Shown in pieces: positions 15,934-62,330 of a stretch of DNA of 64,000 nt. Numbering within the stretch: position 1 is the first letter of the stretch; every line of letters begins with the position of its first letter. The stretch lies in NCBI GenBank assembly GCA_013239625.1, contig MU055549.1, positions 992,001 through 1,056,000 on the forward strand, given 5' to 3'. This stretch comes from Lama guanicoe (lineage: Eukaryota). The notes under the pieces are model-generated. The model was not told where the DNA came from, ran no database searches, and saw nothing but the letters and a program-made list of their open reading frames with translations. The translations under genes were made by a program, and so were the position numbers.

Positions 15934-16176
<243 letters not shown>

Positions 16177-17879: not shown

Positions 17880-20585
17880 TCACACCCAGCAGAGGGGACA
17901 TCGTCACAACTGGGAGCCCACGCTGACGCAGCTCATTGCCCACACACAGTCGGCCTGGGGGCTCACTCCTGGTGCTGTGCATTCTGTGGGTCTGGACAAA
18001 TGTAGTGGCACTGCCCATCAGGACGGCACCATACGCAGGGTCCTTGTGGCCCCCAGACTCCTCCGTGTCCGCCGCCTCGCCCCTCCCCTCAGCCCTGGCA
18101 ACCCTGCTCATTTCACCGTCTCCGTAGGCTGACCCTCCCGAGAACGCCCCAGAGCTGGGCCGGGCAGCAGGCAGCCAGTTCAGATGGGTTTCTTCTGCTC
18201 AGTAACAAGCATTTAAAGATCTTCCGTGTCTTTCGTGGCTTGGCAGCTCATTTCTTTGTGTCTCTGAATAAAATCCCGTTGTCTGGATGGACCAAGGTTT
18301 ATTCATCCGCCCACCTGCTGAAAACATCCTGGTCGCTTCCACATTCTGGTAGTTATGGATAAAGCTGCTGTAAACGTCTGTGTGCAGGTTTTTGTGTGGA
18401 CGTGAGTTTTCAACTCCTTTGCGTGAATACCAAGGGATGCGATGGCTGGACGGGTCACTTGATGAGTAGGTTTAGTCTTGTGAGAAACCATCACACTGTC
18501 TTCCACGGCGGCCGCACGATTTCGCATCCCCGCCCTCCCAGCGCTCCTTACTGGCAGGGCCCCGGCTGCAGCCAGGTGTGGGTGGTGCCACCTCCTTGTG
18601 CTAATCCGCAGCTCCTAAGGCGGGCGTCCCTAATTAGTATCTGTGTGTCTCCTCTGGGAAGGTGTCTGCTCAGATCTGTGGCCTGGTATTTAATTGGGTT
18701 GTTTTCTTTCTGTTGAGTTTTAAGATTTCTTCACATATTTTGGACAATAGTGCTTAACCAGATGTGTCTTCTGTAAATATTTTCTCTCCGTCTGTGGCTG
18801 TCTTATTCTTGACAGTGTCTTTCACGAAGCAGAATTTGTACATTTTAATGAAGTTCAACCTGCCAACTTTTTCTTTCATGCCTTCATGTTCTGTGTAAAA
18901 AGTCATCACCCACTCAGGGTCATCTAGGTTCTCCCTCCGTCGTCTTCTAGAAGCTTTATGGTTTTGCATTTTACACGTAAGTCTGTGACCCACCTTCTTA
19001 CAGCTTCACTGGGGTGTAATTGATACACAAGAAAACTACACATACCCAGCGTATGCAGTCTAAAAGGATGACGCACTTTGAGTTAATTTTTGTGACGCCA
19101 TCAGGTCTGTGTCTGGACTCACATTGTGTGTGTGGCTGTGCAGGTGCCCCTGTCTTTGCTCCACTGTTACCTCTGCTCCTCTGTCAAAGGCCAGCTGACT
19201 ATATTTGTGTGGGTCCGTTTCTGGGCTCTCTGTCTGTTCCATTGATCCATATCCGCCCAGACTTTCACTAACATGACACACGAGCTAGATGCAAAGTCTT
19301 GACATTGGGCGGGGCCCGGCGGGGCCCGCCCTCTGCCTCTGCTCCTCCCCTCCAGGGCTGCTCTGGCTGTTTCGAGTCTTCTGCATCTGTGCATAAGCTG
19401 GAACATCCGTTTGCCAATGTCCACAAAGCCAGTGCTGTGAACCTACGCTGAATCTATAGATCAGTCTGGGGAGAACTGACCCCTCGGCACTACTGAGTCT
19501 TCCTACCCGTGAACATGTACTGTCTCTCCATTTATTTATTCTTCTTCGGTTTCTTTCGTTCAGTTTTGCAGTTTTCCTCACGTAGACTCTGTACCCGTTC
19601 TGCTAGATCGACGCCTTGTACCGTTTTTTCAGTGCTGACATGCCACCTGTCCATCGCTGGCACGTGGGAGGTGATGGACCTCTCCAGGTGAACCCTGTGT
19701 CTTGCTGCCTTCTGCAACTGCTTATCAGTTCCAGGATTTGTTTTTGGTCGATTTGTTGGGACTTTCTACACAGACAATCGTGTCATTTAAAACAAAGCTG
19801 TATCTCCATCTTCTTGATTTGTATTTACTTTCCCTTTCTTGTTGCGTCAGCCAAGATGTCCAGCACGATGCTGAGGAGCAGCAGTGGGAGTGGACTCCTC
19901 CTCTCACACCTGACCTTACAGAAAAGCTTCTGGCCTCTCACCACTCAGTGCGACGTTAGTGTGAGTCTCTGCGGACGCTCTTCAGGCTGAGGAGGCACCT
20001 CGCTGTCCCTGGTTTGCTGACAGCTTTTGTCTCGGGCTTTGATAACTGCTCTTCCTTCCTCTACTGATACAGCCGCACAGTTGCTCTTCTTCAGCCTGTT
20101 GATGTAATGCTTTATTAAACTGGTTTTCAAGTGCGAGCCAGCCTTGCTTGCCTGGGATAAATTCCACTTGCTTGTTGTGCATAATTCTTTCCATACGTTG
20201 TTGGATTTGATCTGCTCGTATTTTGTTGAGGACTTCCGCATCTGTGTTCGTGAGAGAGGCTGCTCTGGAGTCTTCCTCTCGTGTAACGCCCTGGGCTATG
20301 GTATCACGGTGATGCTGGCCTCACAGGATGAGCCACCAAGTGTTCCCTCTGCTTCTATTTTCGGGAGAGACTTAGGAGAGTTCGTATGATCACTCTCTTA
20401 ATTATCTGGTAGACTTCACCAGCAAACCTGCTGGGAAGTTATTAGTTACTGACTCAATTTCTTTAACACACATCCGTCTATTCAGATTGTCCGTTTCTCC
20501 TCGTGTGAGCTTTGGCAGGTAGCGTCTTTCAAGGAATTGGTCCATTTCACGTAGGGCACCAGGTCTGTGAGCACAGAGTTGTTCA
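17880..20585 (-). mobile_element. Old L1 3' region (ORF2 C-terminus / 3'UTR remnant) in LRRC27 intron 10
   Basis: Reverse-strand translations such as KELKTHVHTKTCTQTFTAAL, DQWNRQRAQK, KWRDSTCSRVGRL and QVEFIPGKQGW are decayed L1 ORF2. Confidence 0.85.
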
Positions 20586-21267
20586 CGACGCCGGAGAGAC
20601 TTCTGAGTCTACACTCTGAGCAGTGGGCTGAGACGTGGATGTCCAGAAGCCCCAGGAGGTAGGGTTTTGGGTGTCCAAGAATGAGCTCACTCCCATGAAC
20701 AGATCTGGAGAGAGTAAAGGTTCGCCTGAAGCAGGTGAAACACTCTGGGCCGGAAGGAAAGCGTCTGAGAAGGGGGCTGAGTCTGACCAGGGTGGGGCCT
20801 CCGTGAAGTGAGCAGCCCCTGCCTGCGCTCCCCCCACCACCCCTCCGGCCCCAGGGGAGGGGACATTGTGCCAGGGCCCTTGACGAGCTGTGGGGGTGAG
20901 GCTGCCGCCTCTGGGGCTGCCTCGGTGCAGCCCAGCACAGCAGACCCGGGGCCCTGAGCCACCACCGTCAGGGCGAGACAGTGAGCGGGGGGCCTGGGTG
21001 GTCGGGGAGAACAGGCGAGTCTTCCTGCAGCTGTGAGAGCCAGGGCACAGGGGCGTCGGGCTGGGCCGGAAGGGCCCGTGGAGGCCTGGGCACTCTCGGG
21101 GGGGCAGGGGGGCCGACTGCATCACTCAGGACAGGATGGTGTCTCCTCGGTCTCTGCACTGCTGTGTAACCCCGCACATTTCCCACACACAGCAGCCGCT
21201 GGCGGTGTGGTTTCCTTCAATTTTGAATAAAACCGTGCACCTTCAAGCCGAGCTGACAGGCACCTGC

Positions 21268-21384
21268 CGTCTCCAGGCCCTCGCGGCCCCCCTCACTCCC
21301 CCGAGGGGCGCTAGCCCACGGGACCCGCCTCTCTGGCCGCGCGCTTGCTGCGGCTCTTCTTCCCGGCTCTCCTCCTGGGGGGCA
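21268..21384 (-). CDS. LRRC27: LRRC27 exon 10 (diverged; 3' end at GC donor 21267 or GT donor 21263)
   Basis: Acceptor ctttgccag|TGCC. The ancestral-type frame reads APQEESREEE...GLAPLGGVRGAA and switches frame before EGLET (recalled human ALQERNLEEK...GQAPLEEMRKAAEDLEI). Confidence 0.75.
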
Positions 21385-22627
21385 CTGGCAAAGCCAAGGG
21401 CGATGGGCTAGTCGCGGGGCCTCTCCCATCCCAAGATGGGGGAGGAGCTTCCTCTCCCTCCTTTGGGCCAAACCGCAGTCCCAGGGCGTCGCCAGCGGGC
21501 GGGCGACCTCTCCCCACCCCACCCACGGATGCTGTTTTAAACGCTCCAAGCCCAGGTACCGTGTTACACGCTGAGGACGCTGTGCCGCACGAGGAGAAGG
21601 GGAGTCTTTGCATGTGAAACACACAGTTTTAATGAATCCTCAGACGGAAAGCAGGCACTGCACTGAGCAGGGCTTCAAACACACCCACTCTGCTGGCACC
21701 AGGCCCCCGGGCTCCGGGCCCCTATTCTTTGGTTTTAAATAGGAGCTCCGAGTGGCCCCGGAAGCCCTCGCTCAGAGCTGGGAGTGTGGCGGGAAGGGCG
21801 GCCGGGCCTCCAGTGTCAGGGACACGTGGAGCCTGGTGTGTCCTCTGACTGGGCTCCTGACCGCAGCTCCAACAGCTGCACATCTGTCTGGGTTTCTGCT
21901 CTGAGAATAAAGGCTGAAAGACAGACCACAAGTGTCCTCCACACAGATCAGACCGTGGCCCTTAGGAAAGTCCAGGCCACGGGCCAGGGGTGTCCGTGGA
22001 CAGACATGCTCTGCCGTGGGCTTTCTGAGGGCCCGCGAGGGCGACGTGGGCTCCATAGGGACAGGTGAGAACATCTGAACGCCCTGGACCTCAGTTTAAA
22101 TCACCCACGTGGCTGGGGCTAACCCAGCCTGCAGACCTGTGGCATTTCCTGAGTTCCAGGCCTAAGAGGGATGGCTGGTTCTGCCACCCACCTGTTGCAG
22201 CACGAGGGCTGCTCCAGGCCCTCCGACCATGCTCAGGCTCAGCCCCCGGCAGGAGCAGGGGGCACTTCGCTGCGGTGGGGCAGGAAGGGAGGTGTGGGGA
22301 GGGGTGCGGGGCCCTCTCAGGCGCAGGAGCTCAGAGGTCACCCCACTGGAGTGCAGACACCGGATCAGCATGGTGGGAGTTGTCAGCACAGGGAAAGCAA
22401 GGCCTGCCAGGACCCCGAGCTGCGGGGTTGGGGGAGCTTCTCGGGACCAGGTGCGCACAGCAGGACGGGGTAACTGGACAGAGGCTGCAGTTGCAGCTCT
22501 GAGGGCAGGGAATAAGACTTTCCCACTCTCGGTCCGGTCCCCTCTCTCAGCCGCCTCCTGCTCAGACCAGAGGGGGTGGGGGGGGGTGGCTGGGCCCAGC
22601 AGAACTGAATCAGAACTCGTCACCAAC

Positions 22628-22744
22628 CGCATTCCTTGATTTGCGTGCAGTGATCTCTCTCTGCTTTGTCTCATTTTTCCAGGTGAATTCACGGGTTTTC
22701 TCATTCTGCATCAGATCCGTGGCAAAGGGAATTTTTGATGTCAC
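22628..22744 (-). CDS. LRRC27: LRRC27 exon 9 (117 nt; apparent 2-nt deletion near 22696)
   Basis: Acceptor ttttccag|GTG. Reads VTSKIPFATDLMQNEK, then PVNSPGKMRQSRERSLHANQGM in a different frame (recalled human [39 protein letters not shown]). Donor CG|GTTGGT. Confidence 0.88.
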
Positions 22745-24909
22745 CTGGAAAATGCAACAAGATGGTCAAGTATCCAAGAACACACAGCTGTTGACACCCC
22801 TCTGACCTCTGGGTGCAGCACACGCAGACCCCCGTGCCCCAGACACTGTGGTCACCAGCCCTTGGCCTGGGCTCACTGTCACCTGCTCCGGGCCCTGGGC
22901 TGGCCAGCTGATGGGGGACGAGGCCAGAGCTTGGGACACGGGGCAGAGTGGGCGGTTCCTGCCTCAGCCCAGGTACCAGCACAACAGACCGAACACACCG
23001 TCCAGGGCCCAAGCCTCTCACTCAGACTTGACTGTACCTCCTCACTAAGTCATGCCAACACGTCAGCGCTAACACCTGGCAGGAGAGAAGGCCTCGCACT
23101 CAGAAAACCTGTAACAGAGACTCACGGGGCTTCAGTCAGTGACACGGCGAAGCAGCACAAATAAACTGAAAGTTTGCAACAGAGAGTTCAGTGCGGCTTT
23201 TCAAGGTGTCTGTGATGCCCAGGGAAGACAGGTGCCTCCCGCGCGTGCGTGGACACAGCCAGAGCTCAGCCGTGTCTGCTCACTAGCCCCCCGGCCCGCC
23301 TCAGAGGTGAGGGCAGGCCCCAGGGACCCCATGAGCTCCGGACGGCAGGTCCCAGACACGCCCGCCACCCTGTGACTGCCCAGTGTCAACTACAGAACAT
23401 CTCCTCCTCCCTCCCCAGCAGCTGCGACAGGCGCTACGGGGGAGGAGGTGGCCGGGGAGGCTGGCTGTGGACGGAGGGGGCAGCGGGAGACAGGGTGGGG
23501 GCTGATGTGTTTTGGGATGCTCTCTGTAAGAATTCACTGACCTCTTATTTAGAAAGTGACAAATTCCTTAAAACTTCCATAGCATTACATAAATTATGTT
23601 TAAGTTGCCCTACAAACACTAGAAAATTCACTATTTCTGGCCTGCCCAGACTGAGCGGGTCTCATTGGATTTCATCTACCGCCTCAATGTCTGTCCTCCA
23701 TCTCCTGCAGATCCCCCCTCTCCCCAGCTCCCGGTCTGCCGGGTTGTCTCTCTGTAACCTTCGTCTCCCCTCCTCCCTCCTTGGGCCTGGGCTGCACCTG
23801 GATGTCCGGCAGGAGCTCCAGGCTCCCCTATGCAGACTCCCACCTCCGTGTGCTCCCCTCTGGACTGGCCCTGCTGCTGAGGGCGGAGGCCGGCCCATGG
23901 CTCTCATGCTCTGCTGGGGGCGTCCTTATGAGACCGGGGCTCAGTCCGCTCGCCTGGGCTCCTCGGAACCTGTGTGGCCCCGGCCCTCTGTCCCCTCCCA
24001 CCCCAGGCACCAGGGACATGACTGGAAACACGGCAGGGCCCTCGACCGGCACCGCCACTGCTGCCCAGACCCTGGACCAGTCTGGGAACCAGGCTGACCC
24101 CTCCCCACCTCAGGGAGCCTGGGGCCTGTGCCTGTGTGTCTGCACGTATGAGGGAGGGGCACACCCCTGGGGCAACTGAGAGCAGGATGGAGGGGGCTGG
24201 GGCAAGTGTGGGTGTGGGGAGCAGGCTGGGGGCCGGGGTACTGAACCACCTACCAGGTCACCGTTAAGTGGATCAGCAGGGCAGGACCCGTCTGTCTGCG
24301 TCATCAGCCTTGAGTCTTAGAAGGTGCTTAACACCGCGTGGCGGGGGGAGGAGTGGGAGCAGAAACCACCGGCTGACCTCTCCCCCCGCCCCAGGACGCT
24401 GCCAGGCGGCAGATGCAGCAGAATTAAAGCTGTCTGCAGACTGTCTGGAGGCAGGCACACGTCCATTGACCAGGGTTCTCCTACTAAACAGATTCTAACA
24501 GGAGAAAGACAGACGCTAAATTCGGCAGGTGTCCTTTTAAAGCCAGACATTGAATCTTATTTTACTGTCAAGAGGCGGAGGAGGGAGGAGGACGGTGCCG
24601 CCCCGAGCTCCATGTGTTGAGTGCCGAGCGCACGGTCATGCTCTTCAGGCCAGTGAGACGGACTCAGAGGTCACTGGCAAAGCTGCTGGGCTCAGGGCCT
24701 CATGAAGAAGGAAAATGCAGTGCTTTTCAGAAAGCAGGTGTCAAGGGGCTCAGGACGCAGCTACTGCCCCCGGTTCTGCAGGCGACACCGAAACCCACTG
24801 AGGTGAGTCGTGAACACGCACGCGCCCGTGACCTGGCTGCTTCACTCCCACGAGACGGGCCACCGGAGCTGTGCCAAGAACGTGTGTTTTCACTTTGATC
24901 GGCATTCTT

Positions 24910-27166: not shown

Positions 27167-28221
27167 TGAAGGGGCTGAGGGGACTCCCGGACTGGGCCTC
27201 GGGGGAAGGCGGAGGAGGTCTGCTCAGGTCGTGCGGCAAGGCCTGGACTGAGGCCCAGATCCCGGCCTCACATGGGCACCCTCGCCGGAGGCCCCGAGCC
27301 CACCACCCCAAGCCCCTCGCCTGTCCACCCGTGGTCAGCGCCCAGAGCAGGAGGCTGGCGAGTCGGGCACAGTGACAGCTGGCAACCGCAGGCCCCACGT
27401 GGCCAGCCCAGGGGCCTGAGGTGGGCGGGGCAGGGGTCTGGTGGGGTCAAGGGGCTGCCTGCAGAGTCCTGGCTGGAGGGCACATGTGGCCGAGGAGCCC
27501 GTGCAGGTCGAGGTCCAGAGCTCCCACACCTGCTCTGAAGACACGGACGGGGGCACGGCAGGCGAGGCCTCAGGCACTGTGGCAGGGAGAAGGTGGGCAG
27601 CAGGTAGGGCCCGGGGCCCCAGAGGGGAGACTTCATTATGACAGCCTTGCTGGGCCAGGGCTGCAGACATGGAGGCTGCCCGTGAGAGAGCAGGGGTGCA
27701 CGCCAGGATAGGTGTGGTGGTGACTGTCCACTGGAGAGGAGACGAGGCCTGGACGCCAGGACAGAGACGACTTGGGGAAAGCGGGCGCAGAGTGAGGACA
27801 GGCGAGGCCTCGGGAATGTCTGGGGGAGGGCAGGAGGAGCAGGCCAAGGCAGGACACGGACAGCTTCCCGAGGGAACAAGGTGGTCAGGGGGGCCCCAGG
27901 AGGGCACGGGGCAGCGACGCTCACTTCACAGCGATGCCCGGGCCTGGCCTGAACCCCCTGGGGGAGCTCCCAGGAAGCCAGGGGAGGGCACCGAGACTGC
28001 AGTGGGGTGGCCAGAGCCAGGGCGAGCGCAAGGTGCTGGGGGAGGCCCCCCTGGAGGCCTGTTTTCTGCCCGAGGTCACCTGCTGGCTGCATGACAGAGG
28101 CTGGCGGGCAGTCAGGCTTTGCGAGGCGGGGTGCCTCCTGCATCCGTGAACCTGGACCCTGGCACCCCTCACCCCAGCCCTCGGGACACACGGGGCACTC
28201 AGGGCAGGGCCCCCGACGTAC

Positions 28222-28318
28222 CACGTTCCTCTGCAGGGGCGGGAACCTGCTGAGCTCCCTCCTCCTACTCTTCATCACCCGGGTCTGCTCCCTCCACTCC
28301 TGCAGCGCTCTCCGGTCC
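28222..28318 (-). CDS. LRRC27: LRRC27 exon 8
   Basis: ttcccgcag|G, DRRALQEWREQTRVMKSRRRELSRFPPLQRNV, GTG|GTACGT. 97 nt. Confidence 0.92.
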
Positions 28319-34531: not shown

Positions 34532-34783
<252 letters not shown>

Positions 34784-44224: not shown

Positions 44225-44467
<243 letters not shown>

Positions 44468-46706: not shown

Positions 46707-46913
46707 TTTGAGGCTGGGGTCGTTAAAGATCTCTCCTAAGTGGTGAAGACCTCTTTGACTCAAGTCTAAAATCGGTGAGGAAGAAAAGATGACCCCCTGG
46801 ACGCGGCTGTGACCGTCTCTGGCAGGGGACGTGGGCTCACGCCTGGTGTGACCAACACCGCTCTCTGGGTCAGCAGCCCAACAGGGAGGCTCGCAGGGGC
46901 TGCCTCCTTCCAT
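46707..46913 (-). CDS. LRRC27: LRRC27 first coding exon (exon 2)
   Basis: MEGGSPCEPP...GVIFSSSPILDLSQRGLHHLGEIFNDPSLK (recalled human MEGSSSYEVP...GIIFSSSPILDLSESGL). Donor AAA|GTAAGT. Candidate acceptor ctttgtctgcag at 46977. Confidence 0.95.
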
Positions 46914-51669: not shown

Positions 51670-54200
51670 AAGCCACAAGGCAGGGCTTCTAGTGAATTGA
51701 CCGAGTTGTGCAGCCCTCACCGTGCTCCAGCTGCAGCACATCCCCCTCGCCCGCCAGATCCCCACAGATCTGAGTGTTGACCTTCCTCCTTCTCACCTCC
51801 AGCCCCAGGTAAGCATTGATTTGCTTTCTGTCCCTGTGGCATCTTCAGGATATTTCACATCAATGGAATCAGGCTTTTTTCATCCTATGATAATTCTGAG
51901 GTCCATCTGTGCAGTAGCAGTTATCAGTATTTCACTCTCTGTTGCTGAGTAGTTTTCCACAGCATGGAGGTCCTGTTGGTTTATTCATTCACCCCTGATG
52001 GACAGTTGGACTATTTACACTTGGGGGATATTAAGAAGAGCATTGTTACGACTTTTCGTGCACGAGTATTTGAGTTGCCACATCTTTTCTTTTTTTGGAC
52101 AGACTTCTAGGAGTGGAATTGCTGGCTCATCTGGTAAGTTTATGCTTGAATTTTTAAAGAATTACCTGTTTTCCTAAGTGGCTGTACCATTTTACATTCT
52201 GATCAGCAAAACACAAGGATCCCAGTTCTGCCAATTCCTGGAAAACCCGTGGGAGGAGCTCTCCGGCCCTCGTTTGCTGAGAAGCAGGGCGTCCATTTCC
52301 TTCTTTGAAGGTGTTCCCCTTACCCCACGCCAGGAAGAGGCGACCACTCTGACCATGGAGATGGTCAAGCTGAGTCGTGTAACAGACTTTACCAAACAAC
52401 CGTTACCTTCCATTAGTTCTCTCCATGTATTTATCTTCCCACAATTCACCTCACTAGAAACCCACACTGTTTTTCCTTTGTCTTGTCACTTCCCCATAAT
52501 TTATTTCCCTTTTTTGAAATGGTATATAAACTCTTGGATATGATCACTTTCTGAGTTTTCACTTCTTTTCTGTGACCCCCGCCACCTGCTGTGTATACAA
52601 AATAAGCATTTTCTCCTGTCATTCTGTCTTTTGTCGGTTTAATTCACATGCCCCAGGAACTGAGTACAAGAGGATAGAGGAAAAGCTTTTTTTCCTTTGC
52701 TACAGTATTGTCTGTCTTTTTTATTGTGGCCTTTCAAGTAAGTATATAGTAGTAACTCACTGTGGTTTGAATTTTCATCTGCCTAATGATTCATGGTGGG
52801 AAGCACAGTTTTATGTGTGTATGTGCCATTGGTATGAAATAGTCGGATGTCTATTCAAGGCTTTTGTCTACCTTTTAATTGGGTGGCTTGTTTTCTTATG
52901 ATCGAGTTGTAAAAGTCCTTTATATATTCTGTGTACAGGCCTCCAGAAATATGATTTGCAGTATTTCCTCCCAGTCTGTGTCTTGTTTTTTTGTTTTCTT
53001 AATGGTGTCTTTTGAAGCACAAAAGTTTTTGAGGTTAGTGGAGACCAGTTTAGGGTTTTTCCAGGCTCGTGTGTTCGGTGTCACAGCCAATAGCTCTTTG
53101 CCTAAAATAAAGCCGTGCAGGTAGTCCCCTCGGTGTTCTCCCAGTGCTTAGTGTTGGCTTCTACACTTAGGCCTCTGACCCATTATGAGCTAACGTTTAT
53201 GTGCAGTCCAGGCTTACTGTTCTCATGTGGACGTCTCAGCGCCTGCTGTTTGCTTTGGGGGAATGTTCTTAATTATAAATTCCATTTTGTTTACATACAT
53301 GGGCCCCTCACGTTTCCTGTTCTGTCAGTTTTGATAAATTGTATTCTTCAAAGAACTTCTCCATTTCATCTGAGTTGTGAGTTTATGGCACAAAATTTTC
53401 ACAATACTCCTTTTTATTACTCTTCTAGTGTCTCTAGGCTCTGTGGTGATACCCCTTTTTCATTTCTGAAATGGCAATTTTCTTGCTCCTTTTTCTTATT
53501 CTGTAATGCCAGAAGTCTGTCGATTTTATTGATTTTTTCCAAGGGAACAATAATTTGCTTTGTTGATTTTTCCCCAGCATTAATTGCTTTCATGGATTTC
53601 TGCTCTGATGTCTTTTCCTTCCTTCTTTCTTGAATTTAAATTACTCTCCTTTTTTTCAGCTCCTTAAGATAGAGCTTAGATCACTGATCTTAAACTTCTC
53701 TTATTTTTCTCATATAAGCATTTAAAATTAGCTGCATCCCACCAATTTTATTATGTTGGTTTTCATAATATTCAGTTTTAAATATTTCATAATTTCCCTT
53801 AGGATTTATTACTTGGTCCATGGATCATATAGAAGTTAGCTGCTAAATTTCCAAATGTTTGTAGACTTTTAGCGTATCTTTATTGCTGATGCCTTATTTA
53901 ATTTCTCTGTGTTCAGACAACATATTCTGTATGATTTCAAACCCTTGAAATTTACTGAAACTTGGGGTTTTTTTCTCCCAGGATATAACTTATCTCTGTG
54001 AATATTCCTTGCACACTTGAAAATAATGTGTGATATGCAGTCGTTAGTTACAACGTCCTATAGATGTCAGCCCAGTCAAGTTGTGTAGTAGTGTTCCCCA
54101 GACTTCTGTGTCAGTAATTCTGCATGTGTGTGCTTGTTCTGTGGACTACTGTGAGAGAAGAATGGAAATGTCCTGTGATGGGGGATAGTCTGCTCTTTCC
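51670..54200 (-). mobile_element. Old L1 remnants (3' end and ORF2), interrupted by an LTR
   Basis: T-rich plus strand with ctaggagtggaattgctgg, gtggctgtaccattttacattc, ctcactgtggtttgaattttcat and tttgaagcacaaaagttttt. Confidence 0.8.
52249..52704 (+). mobile_element. ERV1-class solo LTR (MER34/MER39-like); 5' boundary uncertain
   Basis: TATA-like ggtatataaac and 3' end aagaggatagaggaaaagctttttttcctttgctaca. Confidence 0.6.
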
Positions 54201-54209
54201 TTGGGCTGT

Positions 54210-55532
54210 TGTATTAGTCAGGGTTCTCCAGAGAAACAGAATCAATAGGACATAGATGGATAGACAAACAGATATATAGATGTAGACATAGATGCAGATG
54301 CAGATGTAGATGAGATAGATGTGGACGTAGACATAGATGTGGATGTAGGTGTAGATACAGGTGTAGATGTAGACATAGATGCAGATGCAGATGTAGACAT
54401 AGATGTGGATGTAGGTGTAAATGATGTAGATGTAGATGCAGATGTAGACGTAGATGTAGATGTTGATATAGATGTAGATGACATAGATGTAGATGTAAAT
54501 AATGTAGATGTAGATATAGACATAGATGTAGATGCAGATCTAGATACAGATGTAGACATAGATGTAGACATGGACGTAGACATGGACATGGATGTAAATG
54601 ACATAGATATAGACGTAGACTTAGATGTAGATACAGATGCAGATGTAGACGTAGACGTAGATGTGGATGTAGATACAGATGTAGACGTAGATGTAGATGA
54701 CATAGATGTAGATACAGATGTAGATGTAGATGCAGATCTAGATACAGATGTAGACATAGATGTAGACATAGACGTAGACGTGGATGTGGATGTAAATGAT
54801 GTGGATGTAGAACAGACGTAGATGTAGATGTGGATACAGATGCAGACGTAGACATAGATGTGGATGTTGATGTGGGTGTAGATGTAGATATGGATGTACA
54901 TGATGTAGATGTAGATGTAGACATAGGTGTTGATATAGATGTAGATGACGTACATGGAGATGTAGGCATAGATTCATACGTAGATGTAGCCGTGGACTTA
55001 GGTGTGGATGCAGCTGTAGGTGTAGATGCAGATGTAGACATAGATGTAGATGCAGATGCAGGCGTAGATGTAGACGTATGAGAGGATACACGGTTCTGGC
55101 AGCTGAGAAGTCCCAGGAGCTGCTGTCTGCACGTGGGGAACTGGGGTGGGGGCTGGCGGTGTAACTCGCAGCCCGAGGCCTAAGGCCTGGGAACCGGGGA
55201 GAGGGGTGTGCGGGTGGGGAGGGCGCTGGGGCGAGTGCAGGGTCTGAAGGACCAGGAACCAGGAGCTCTGATGTCCGTGAGCAGGGAAAGATGGACGTCC
55301 CAGCCCGAGAAGGAGAGAGTTCTCTCTTCCTCTGCTGATTCGTTCTCTTCAGGCCCTGCGCGGGTTGGCTGGGACCCACCCTGTCGGGGAGGGCCGCCTC
55401 CTTTCCTGAGTCTACTGACTCGTGCACTAATCTCCGCCAGGAACACCTCACGGGCACACCCAGAAACCAGGCTTGACTGGCGAGCTGGGCATCCCTTAGC
55501 CCAGTCAAGCGGACGTGAAGTTAACCACCACA
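54210..55532 (-). mobile_element. MLT2 (ERVL) LTR with an internal microsatellite expansion and an adjacent stub of internal sequence
   Basis: Starts tgtattagtcagggttctccagagaaacagaa and ends cccagtcaagcggacgtgaagttaaccaccaca, followed by agtccacctcttgtca (PPT side of ERVL-int). Confidence 0.85.
54252..55078. repeat. About 830-bp imperfect (GATGTA)n hexamer array
   Basis: Directly visible variants gatgta, gacata, gatgca, gacgta. Confidence 0.97.
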
Positions 55533-62198: not shown

Positions 62199-62330
62199 NN
62201 NNNNNNNNNNNNNNNNNNNNNNNNNNNNNNNNNNNNNNNNNNNNNNNNNNNNNNNNNNNNNNNNNNNNNNNNNNNNNNNNNNNNNNNNNNNNNNNNNNNN
62301 NNNNNNNNNNNNNNNNNNNNNNNNNNNNNN
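62199..62330. other. Assembly gap (132 N) hiding the rest of STK32C exon 1 and its donor
   Basis: Run of N. Confidence 0.99.

Follow-up and report, generated by a model that had tools for sequence, protein, structure and literature searches.

The window, by which we mean the whole stretch of 64,000 nucleotides of Lama guanicoe DNA analysed here, contains the gene LRRC27 on its minus strand, as identified by tblastn. Exon coordinates (Table 1) were obtained by tblastn of database LRRC27 proteins against the window, and the database proteins were also used for all full-length comparisons. All coding exons of Vicugna pacos LRRC27 were recovered with 98-100% identity per exon, and identities to Camelus ferus LRRC27 ranged from 87 to 98% per exon. 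The similarity is collinear exon by exon and includes the LRR region, as expected of an orthologue, and the database matches of the gene are named LRRC27 and carry LRR Pfam domains. The same exon order, LRR region and C-terminal exon are found in LRRC27 of other mammals (pig, peccary, deer, cattle and horse). Exons 9 and 11 lie 6665 nt apart. A stretch at 23687-23830, considered as a diverged exon by comparison with the human protein, was dropped as it found no support in tblastn. In the main coding exons, five residues differ between the window and alpaca RefSeq LRRC27 (V>D, R>C, E>K, L>V and E>Q), at sites in 46707-46913, 44226-44356, 34564-34717 and 28222-28318 and at 22708. The DNA thus probably belongs to a New World camelid species or lineage distinct from that of the alpaca reference.

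Table 1. Features of LRRC27 in the window; a slash marks a splice boundary.
Feature	Position	Strand	Evidence
Coding exon	46913-46707	-	tblastn
Coding exon	about 44356-44226	-	tblastn
Coding exon	about 40932-40872	-	tblastn
Coding exon	about 34717-34564	-	tblastn
Coding exon	about 32416-32046	-	tblastn
Coding exon	about 31056-30908	-	tblastn
Exon 7, directly before exon 9 (..RRELSRFPPLQRNV), donor GTG/GTACGT	28318-28222	-	tblastn with camelid proteins, and sequence
Exon 9, 117 nt, frame 0 throughout (VTSKIPFATDLMQNEK, then new TREFTWKNETKQREITARKSRNA)	22744-22628	-	tblastn, RefSeq camelid proteins
Site of 2-nt deletion, lone A at 22696	22696..22695	-	outgroup similarity changes frame here
Alternative terminal exon in intron 9 (PLFSEQKPRQ..LLFKTKE, stop), V. 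pacos isoform X1	21913-21722	-	tblastn, 98% identity
Exon 10, likely a decaying leftover; 121 nt to GT donor, 117 nt to GC	21384-21264	-	outgroup alignment
Likely 1-nt deletion in Asp codon (..GCG AGG G-C CTG GAG ACG)	21278-21277	-	..AAR DLET.. of outgroup proteins
GCAG/GT: GC at the presumed original donor (21267-21266), GT 4 nt downstream (21263-21262)	21267-21262	-	sequence
Exon 11, last coding exon, stop TAA at 15936-15934; alternative acceptor 16075	16080-15934	-	tblastn, camelid isoforms

The borders of exon 9 are normal (acceptor AG, donor GT). In comparison with LRRC27 proteins of seven outgroups (pig, peccary, deer, cattle, horse, colugo and tamandua), exon 9 aligns over its initial 16 codons (VTSKIPFATDLMQNEK) in frame 0 and, collinearly, over the following 22 (PVNSPGKMRQSRERSLHANQGM) in frame +1, with a lone A at 22696 standing in place of an outgroup Thr/Ile codon between ..NEK and PVN... 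The switch from frame 0 to frame +1 at this lone A therefore points to a loss of two nucleotides at 22696/22695. The pig counterpart of the exon comprises 39 residues plus 2 nt, i.e. 119 nt. A 117-nt exon 9 with a frame switch at 22696 and a 2-nt deletion had been proposed in an earlier sequence-only reading of this DNA, and all seven outgroup proteins agree with it, so that the deletion is well supported by protein comparison.

Sequence reads over positions 21000-23100 were compared in one DNA run and three RNA runs, with a likeness cut of 95%. The contigs of the DNA run (X2), which bears another organism label and belongs to another study, cover this interval without gaps and have no length change in exon 9 or exon 10; their sole exonic change is 22708 G>C, which replaces Gln by Glu, the residue of alpaca RefSeq LRRC27. 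Furthermore, exon 9 is represented by the same 39 frame-0 codons in the RefSeq proteins of three camelids, with ..MENEKTREFTWKNETKQREITARKSRNA in V. pacos and ..TGEFTWKSETKQREITARKSRKA in C. dromedarius and likewise in C. ferus. As the shifted exon is common to alpaca, dromedary and wild camel, the deletion is real and arose before camels and llamas diverged. The alternative of an assembly or sequencing error, with a true exon 9 of 119 nt, could appeal to the short A run that the deletion adjoins (GAAAAC), an error-prone context, but is exceedingly improbable in view of the gap-free contigs of an independent DNA run and the 39-codon exon shared by gene models of three other, concordant camelid assemblies.

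Exon 11 matches the outgroup proteins in frame 0 with scores of 121-174 and is 100% identical to that of V. pacos isoform X3. The exon is open, and its C-terminal motif is kept in both dromedary and the window, which bears out the earlier claim of an open and conserved last exon. We infer that selection acts on this tail. C. ferus isoform X1 changes frame within the exon (..ALWGRL, corresponding to window frame +2; 15937-16080), either as a real lesion of the wild camel or as an assembly error, and this frameshift weakens the case for selection.

The camelid LRRC27 protein cluster consists of 20 members, all of them named database entries, and the member sequences that were read were mapped onto the window. 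In V. pacos X3 (XP_072828249.1), C. dromedarius XP_064344644.1 and C. ferus X1 (XP_032346516.1), exon 9 is joined straight to exon 11 at 16080, in frame, and the joint in the RefSeq models reads ..SRNA/ARKLQDEV. The last exon is thus still reached in frame in the models of three camelids, as had been proposed. Over this tail, identity of the window to alpaca X3 is 97% for the exon 9 part and 100% for the exon 11 part. In V. pacos X6 and C. ferus X4 the acceptor used after exon 9 is 16075 instead, giving KAAG and then a stop, and V. pacos X1 joins exon 9 to the alternative terminal exon in intron 9, before which an acceptor (ctttcag/) is visible. Other isoforms depart after exon 7. Splicing at the 3' end of the gene is diverse, and further alternative terminal exons (20690-20704, 23037-23075 and 27271-27770) read ICSWE-stop, VLALTCWHDLVRR-stop, SSLSWRPG.. 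and CLRPRLPCPRP...

Exon 10 is absent from all alpaca isoforms examined (9 of 9), including unproductive ones. Since several of these isoforms are unproductive, the alpaca models seem to follow transcripts rather than homology and appear to have been built on transcript evidence. Only one wild-camel isoform, C. ferus X2, contains exon 10, and it terminates in a stop. Its exon 10 corresponds to window frame X (PPGGDPGRRA..AASARPE) and then to frame Z (EAGPAGWRPSGEQGGP), which implies a frame-changing indel between camel and llama within the exon; consequently, no single exon 10 frame is common to camelids. The RefSeq models thus suggest skipping of exon 10 as the main route. Exon 10 itself looks like a decaying leftover.

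Against the outgroups, exon 10 of the window aligns collinearly in the frame APQEES..LAPLGGVRGAAR, with scores of 34-62. After ..GAAR the outgroup proteins continue with D-L-E/Q-T/V and then ARxLQDEV; the L-E-T of the window falls in the other open frame. The outgroup length is restored if one base of the Asp codon was lost at about 21278 and the exon ended at ACG (21268). The 1-nt deletion in exon 10 that had been proposed earlier is therefore likely, with L-E-T in the other open frame in its favour and a placement at about 21278, although this protein comparison turns on three matching residues. The original donor probably lay at 21267-21266, where GC is now found instead of GT; the letters ACG/GCAGGT are present as had been claimed.

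The frame shifted by the exon 9 deletion is stop-free through the exon 9 tail and exon 10, again as claimed. In shuffled sequence of matching composition, an open frame is expected with a chance of 0.30 in the exon 9 tail and 0.61 in exon 10; for both parts together the figure is 0.18. Among 117-nt windows taken from the adjacent intron, 42% are open, and the G+C content of exon 10 is 76%. A stop-free shifted frame is by itself not unusual.

Splice donors were compared by a rough position-weight score based on consensus tables. On this score the GT donor of exon 10 (CAG/GTGCCT) reaches 1.1, against 4.7-7.5 for the better donors of LRRC27, and the GC donor (ACG/GCAGGT) is off consensus at positions -2 and +4. 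Both candidate donors of exon 10 are weak on this score. GC donors usually have a strong consensus around them. Inclusion of exon 10 as 21384-21264 (121 nt) leads to a stop after GQKAAG in the last exon. A second AG within the exon offers a possible start at 21374.

RNA contigs of 57 nt from two runs belonging to two studies, X15 (depth 500) and X17 (depth 68), span the joint of exons 7 and 9 and begin with 27 letters (..CAGGTTCCCGCCCCTGCAGAGGAACCT) and continue into exon 9 for its first 30 nt. This junction, at 22744, is in phase 0 (..FPPLQRNL/VTSK..). The 3' part of LRRC27 is therefore transcribed and spliced. Within 21000-23100, RNA contigs were found for neither exon 10 nor the remainder of exon 9, a result that is uninformative given the 95% cut, and the third RNA run (X18) gave no contigs in this interval. 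The RNA runs differ from the window at 13 of 383 intron letters (3.4%) and probably derive from another camelid, so exon contigs may miss the 95% likeness cut. A unitary pseudogene is contradicted by the in-frame path together with the spliced contigs at depths of 500 and 68. Exon 7 ends with the codon GTG in the window and with CTG in the RNA contigs, and the RefSeq proteins have Leu there. With GTG, another GT arises three bases before the donor (AAC/GTG/GTACGT; 28222-28227), a possible in-frame alternative donor.

We put at about 70% the probability that skipping of exon 10 is the rescue of the exon 9 frameshift, with 23 new residues. According to this reconstruction, the 2-nt loss occurred in the third-from-last coding exon of LRRC27 in an ancestor shared by camels and llamas, and the camelid mRNA would also omit exon 10. 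As it lies between phase-2 and phase-0 boundaries, exon 10 would have a length of 3n+1, assuming conserved intron positions. The 2-nt deletion and the skipped exon would then together be divisible by 3, so that exon 9 would meet exon 11 in phase 0 and the downstream frame, as in the annotated models, is kept. In the product, 23 new residues (TREFTWKNETKQREITARKSRNA) would replace the former tail of exon 9, about 40 residues formerly derived from exon 10 would be gone, and the conserved C-terminal 48 residues would be retained. Exon 10, freed from coding constraint, would have decayed, as suggested by the likely 1-nt deletion, by the GC at its probable donor and by the frame-changing differences between the camel and llama lineages. 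The order of the 2-nt deletion and the loss of exon 10 is tentative in this reconstruction.

An alternative route, which had been favoured in the sequence-only reading, retains exon 10: entry into the exon would be at 21384 in phase 0, translation would follow the shifted frame (CPPGGEPGRR..GSEGGREGLET), and the exit would be the GC donor after 21268, so that the two deletions would offset each other and about 57-62 residues would be new. The arithmetic fits, with 117 + 117 nt, an open frame and the letters ACG/GCAGGT in place; the 1-nt deletion near 21278 is plausible, and C. ferus X2 shows inclusion of exon 10 to be possible in at least one camelid. However, exon 10 occurs in none of the alpaca RefSeq isoforms examined, the GC donor lacks a strong surrounding consensus, and an open frame at 76% G+C is expected by chance (0.61). 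Moreover, inclusion of exon 10 in C. ferus leads to a stop in a frame unlike that of the window, and read-through can therefore not be a rescue shared by camelids. We consider this route improbable. Transcripts skipping these exons had been set beforehand as a test, and the annotated models do skip exon 10, which speaks against the segment of about 57 residues; the RefSeq models point to 23 new residues instead. Of the original proposal of a lineage-specific frameshift with rescue, the frameshift is real, the state is confined to camelids among 43 proteins and the tail stays in frame, whereas the read-through of exon 10 most likely gives way to its omission. Exon 10 of the window nevertheless measures exactly 117 nt to the GC donor and is open in phase 0, as an in-frame cassette exon would be. 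Two open frames and an in-frame length would coincide by chance with a probability of about 0.06 (by shuffling, with 1/3 for the length), which counts against skipping. There is accordingly a slim chance that llamas and alpacas produce a minor in-frame isoform with exon 10 via the GC donor, and it is similarly doubtful that in llamas and alpacas, and not in camels, exon 10 was reborn as an in-frame 117-nt cassette with a GC-AG intron. If so, about 62 consecutive residues would be in a frame unused by other mammals with the conserved tail still reached, and the compensated frameshift would span an intron.

The 3' end of camelid LRRC27 could also be degenerating, with products ending in alternative exons or soon after exon 9, and exon 11 intact by chance. 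The number of annotated alternative 3' ends is compatible with such a process (27770-27639, about 27570-27271, 23075-23037, 21913-21722, 20704-20690 and the KAAG-stop form at 16075), as is the frameshift inside the last exon of C. ferus X1, and on a rough consideration 71 codons could have stayed open over the camel-llama divergence without selection. We regard degeneration as unlikely, since the last exon is open with its motif kept in dromedary and the window, the 2-nt deletion is matched exactly by the loss of an exon of 3n+1 length, and in-frame full-length models exist in three species. Entry into exon 10 at the second AG (21374) and exit by the GT donor at 21264 would give a 111-nt exon in the ancestral frame (EESREEE..LAPLGGVRGAARAWRRQ), and 117 + 111 nt would likewise join in phase 0 at both ends with an open frame. 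This path is used by no annotated isoform and has a weak donor, and it is very improbable. Skipping of exon 10 hence remains our preferred reading.

The spacing between the motifs SKIPFATDL and LQDEV was counted in 43 mammalian LRRC27 proteins that contain both. Most have 71-85 residues between them. A spacing of 56-60 was found in rabbit, hare and one further protein, in which part of the exon 10 segment is missing, and a spacing of 38 in three camelids only. Camelid LRRC27 thus differs from that of other mammals in a spacing of 38 as opposed to 71-85 residues, with 23 of the 38 in a new frame. Rabbit and hare (..RIKQHTQQ) and the protein P0008 (..VRGQS) run straight into ARKLQDEV, the second half of the exon 10 segment being absent, and their sequences suggest an independent shortening of the same region. 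As rabbit and hare do without part of it, the exon 10 segment looks dispensable. From these protein sequences, the segment appears variable in length and the camelid state unique in the 43-protein sample.

Exon skipping that restores the reading frame is the principle of Duchenne therapy and a general splicing phenomenon. The camelid gene resembles this type of skipping in that an out-of-frame lesion is made in-frame by omitting a neighbouring exon of complementary length; it differs in being a fixed evolutionary state common to a mammal family, rather than somatic or therapeutic. The case is also comparable to compensatory pairs of frameshifting indels, which are reported to be rare after stringent filtering and enriched near gene ends and in less conserved genes (Biba, Klink and Bazykin 2022, PMC8935012). 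Shared features are a frameshifting indel near the gene end in a poorly conserved protein, its offset by a second change, and the resulting new residues. Unlike in such pairs, an entire exon of 3n+1 length most likely dropped out as the second change in camelids, and the likely second small indel, in exon 10, probably sits in sequence that is no longer translated: in the annotation, the models of three species skip exon 10, so that the stretch between the two indels is left out rather than translated in a shifted frame.

If the preferred reading, skipping of exon 10, holds, a gene may tolerate a frameshift over many millions of years through the loss of a neighbouring exon of complementary length; what results is a shorter protein that gains a short new peptide and retains its conserved end. 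It also follows that a second indel that restores the frame may be located in a disused exon, and that frame arithmetic on the genome alone can overstate the amount of new protein. LRRC27 is poorly studied; the 12 best-ranked of 77 papers naming it are association or expression studies, and a literature search for LRRC27 together with camels found none. The biological weight of the case is modest for this reason, and its novelty is limited in that the skipped form is already present in public RefSeq models. We regard camelid LRRC27 as a compensated frameshift that is ordinary to mildly interesting.

Some further observations concern the surroundings of the coding exons. A run of 132 N at 62199-62330 is located in very GC-rich sequence well upstream of LRRC27 exon 1, and a long low-complexity repeat at 54100-55500 translates as HLHL, IYIY or STST runs. 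The dromedary gene model KAB1270977 begins with MYIRIYIYTHINIHIYVY.., an IY-rich low-complexity run resembling this repeat, and its start looks like an annotation artefact, if it derives from the corresponding camel repeat. In intron 10 (18000-20400), open frames resemble retrotransposon remains. A 2658-nt RNA contig of run X15 starts at 21109 and extends into this intron.
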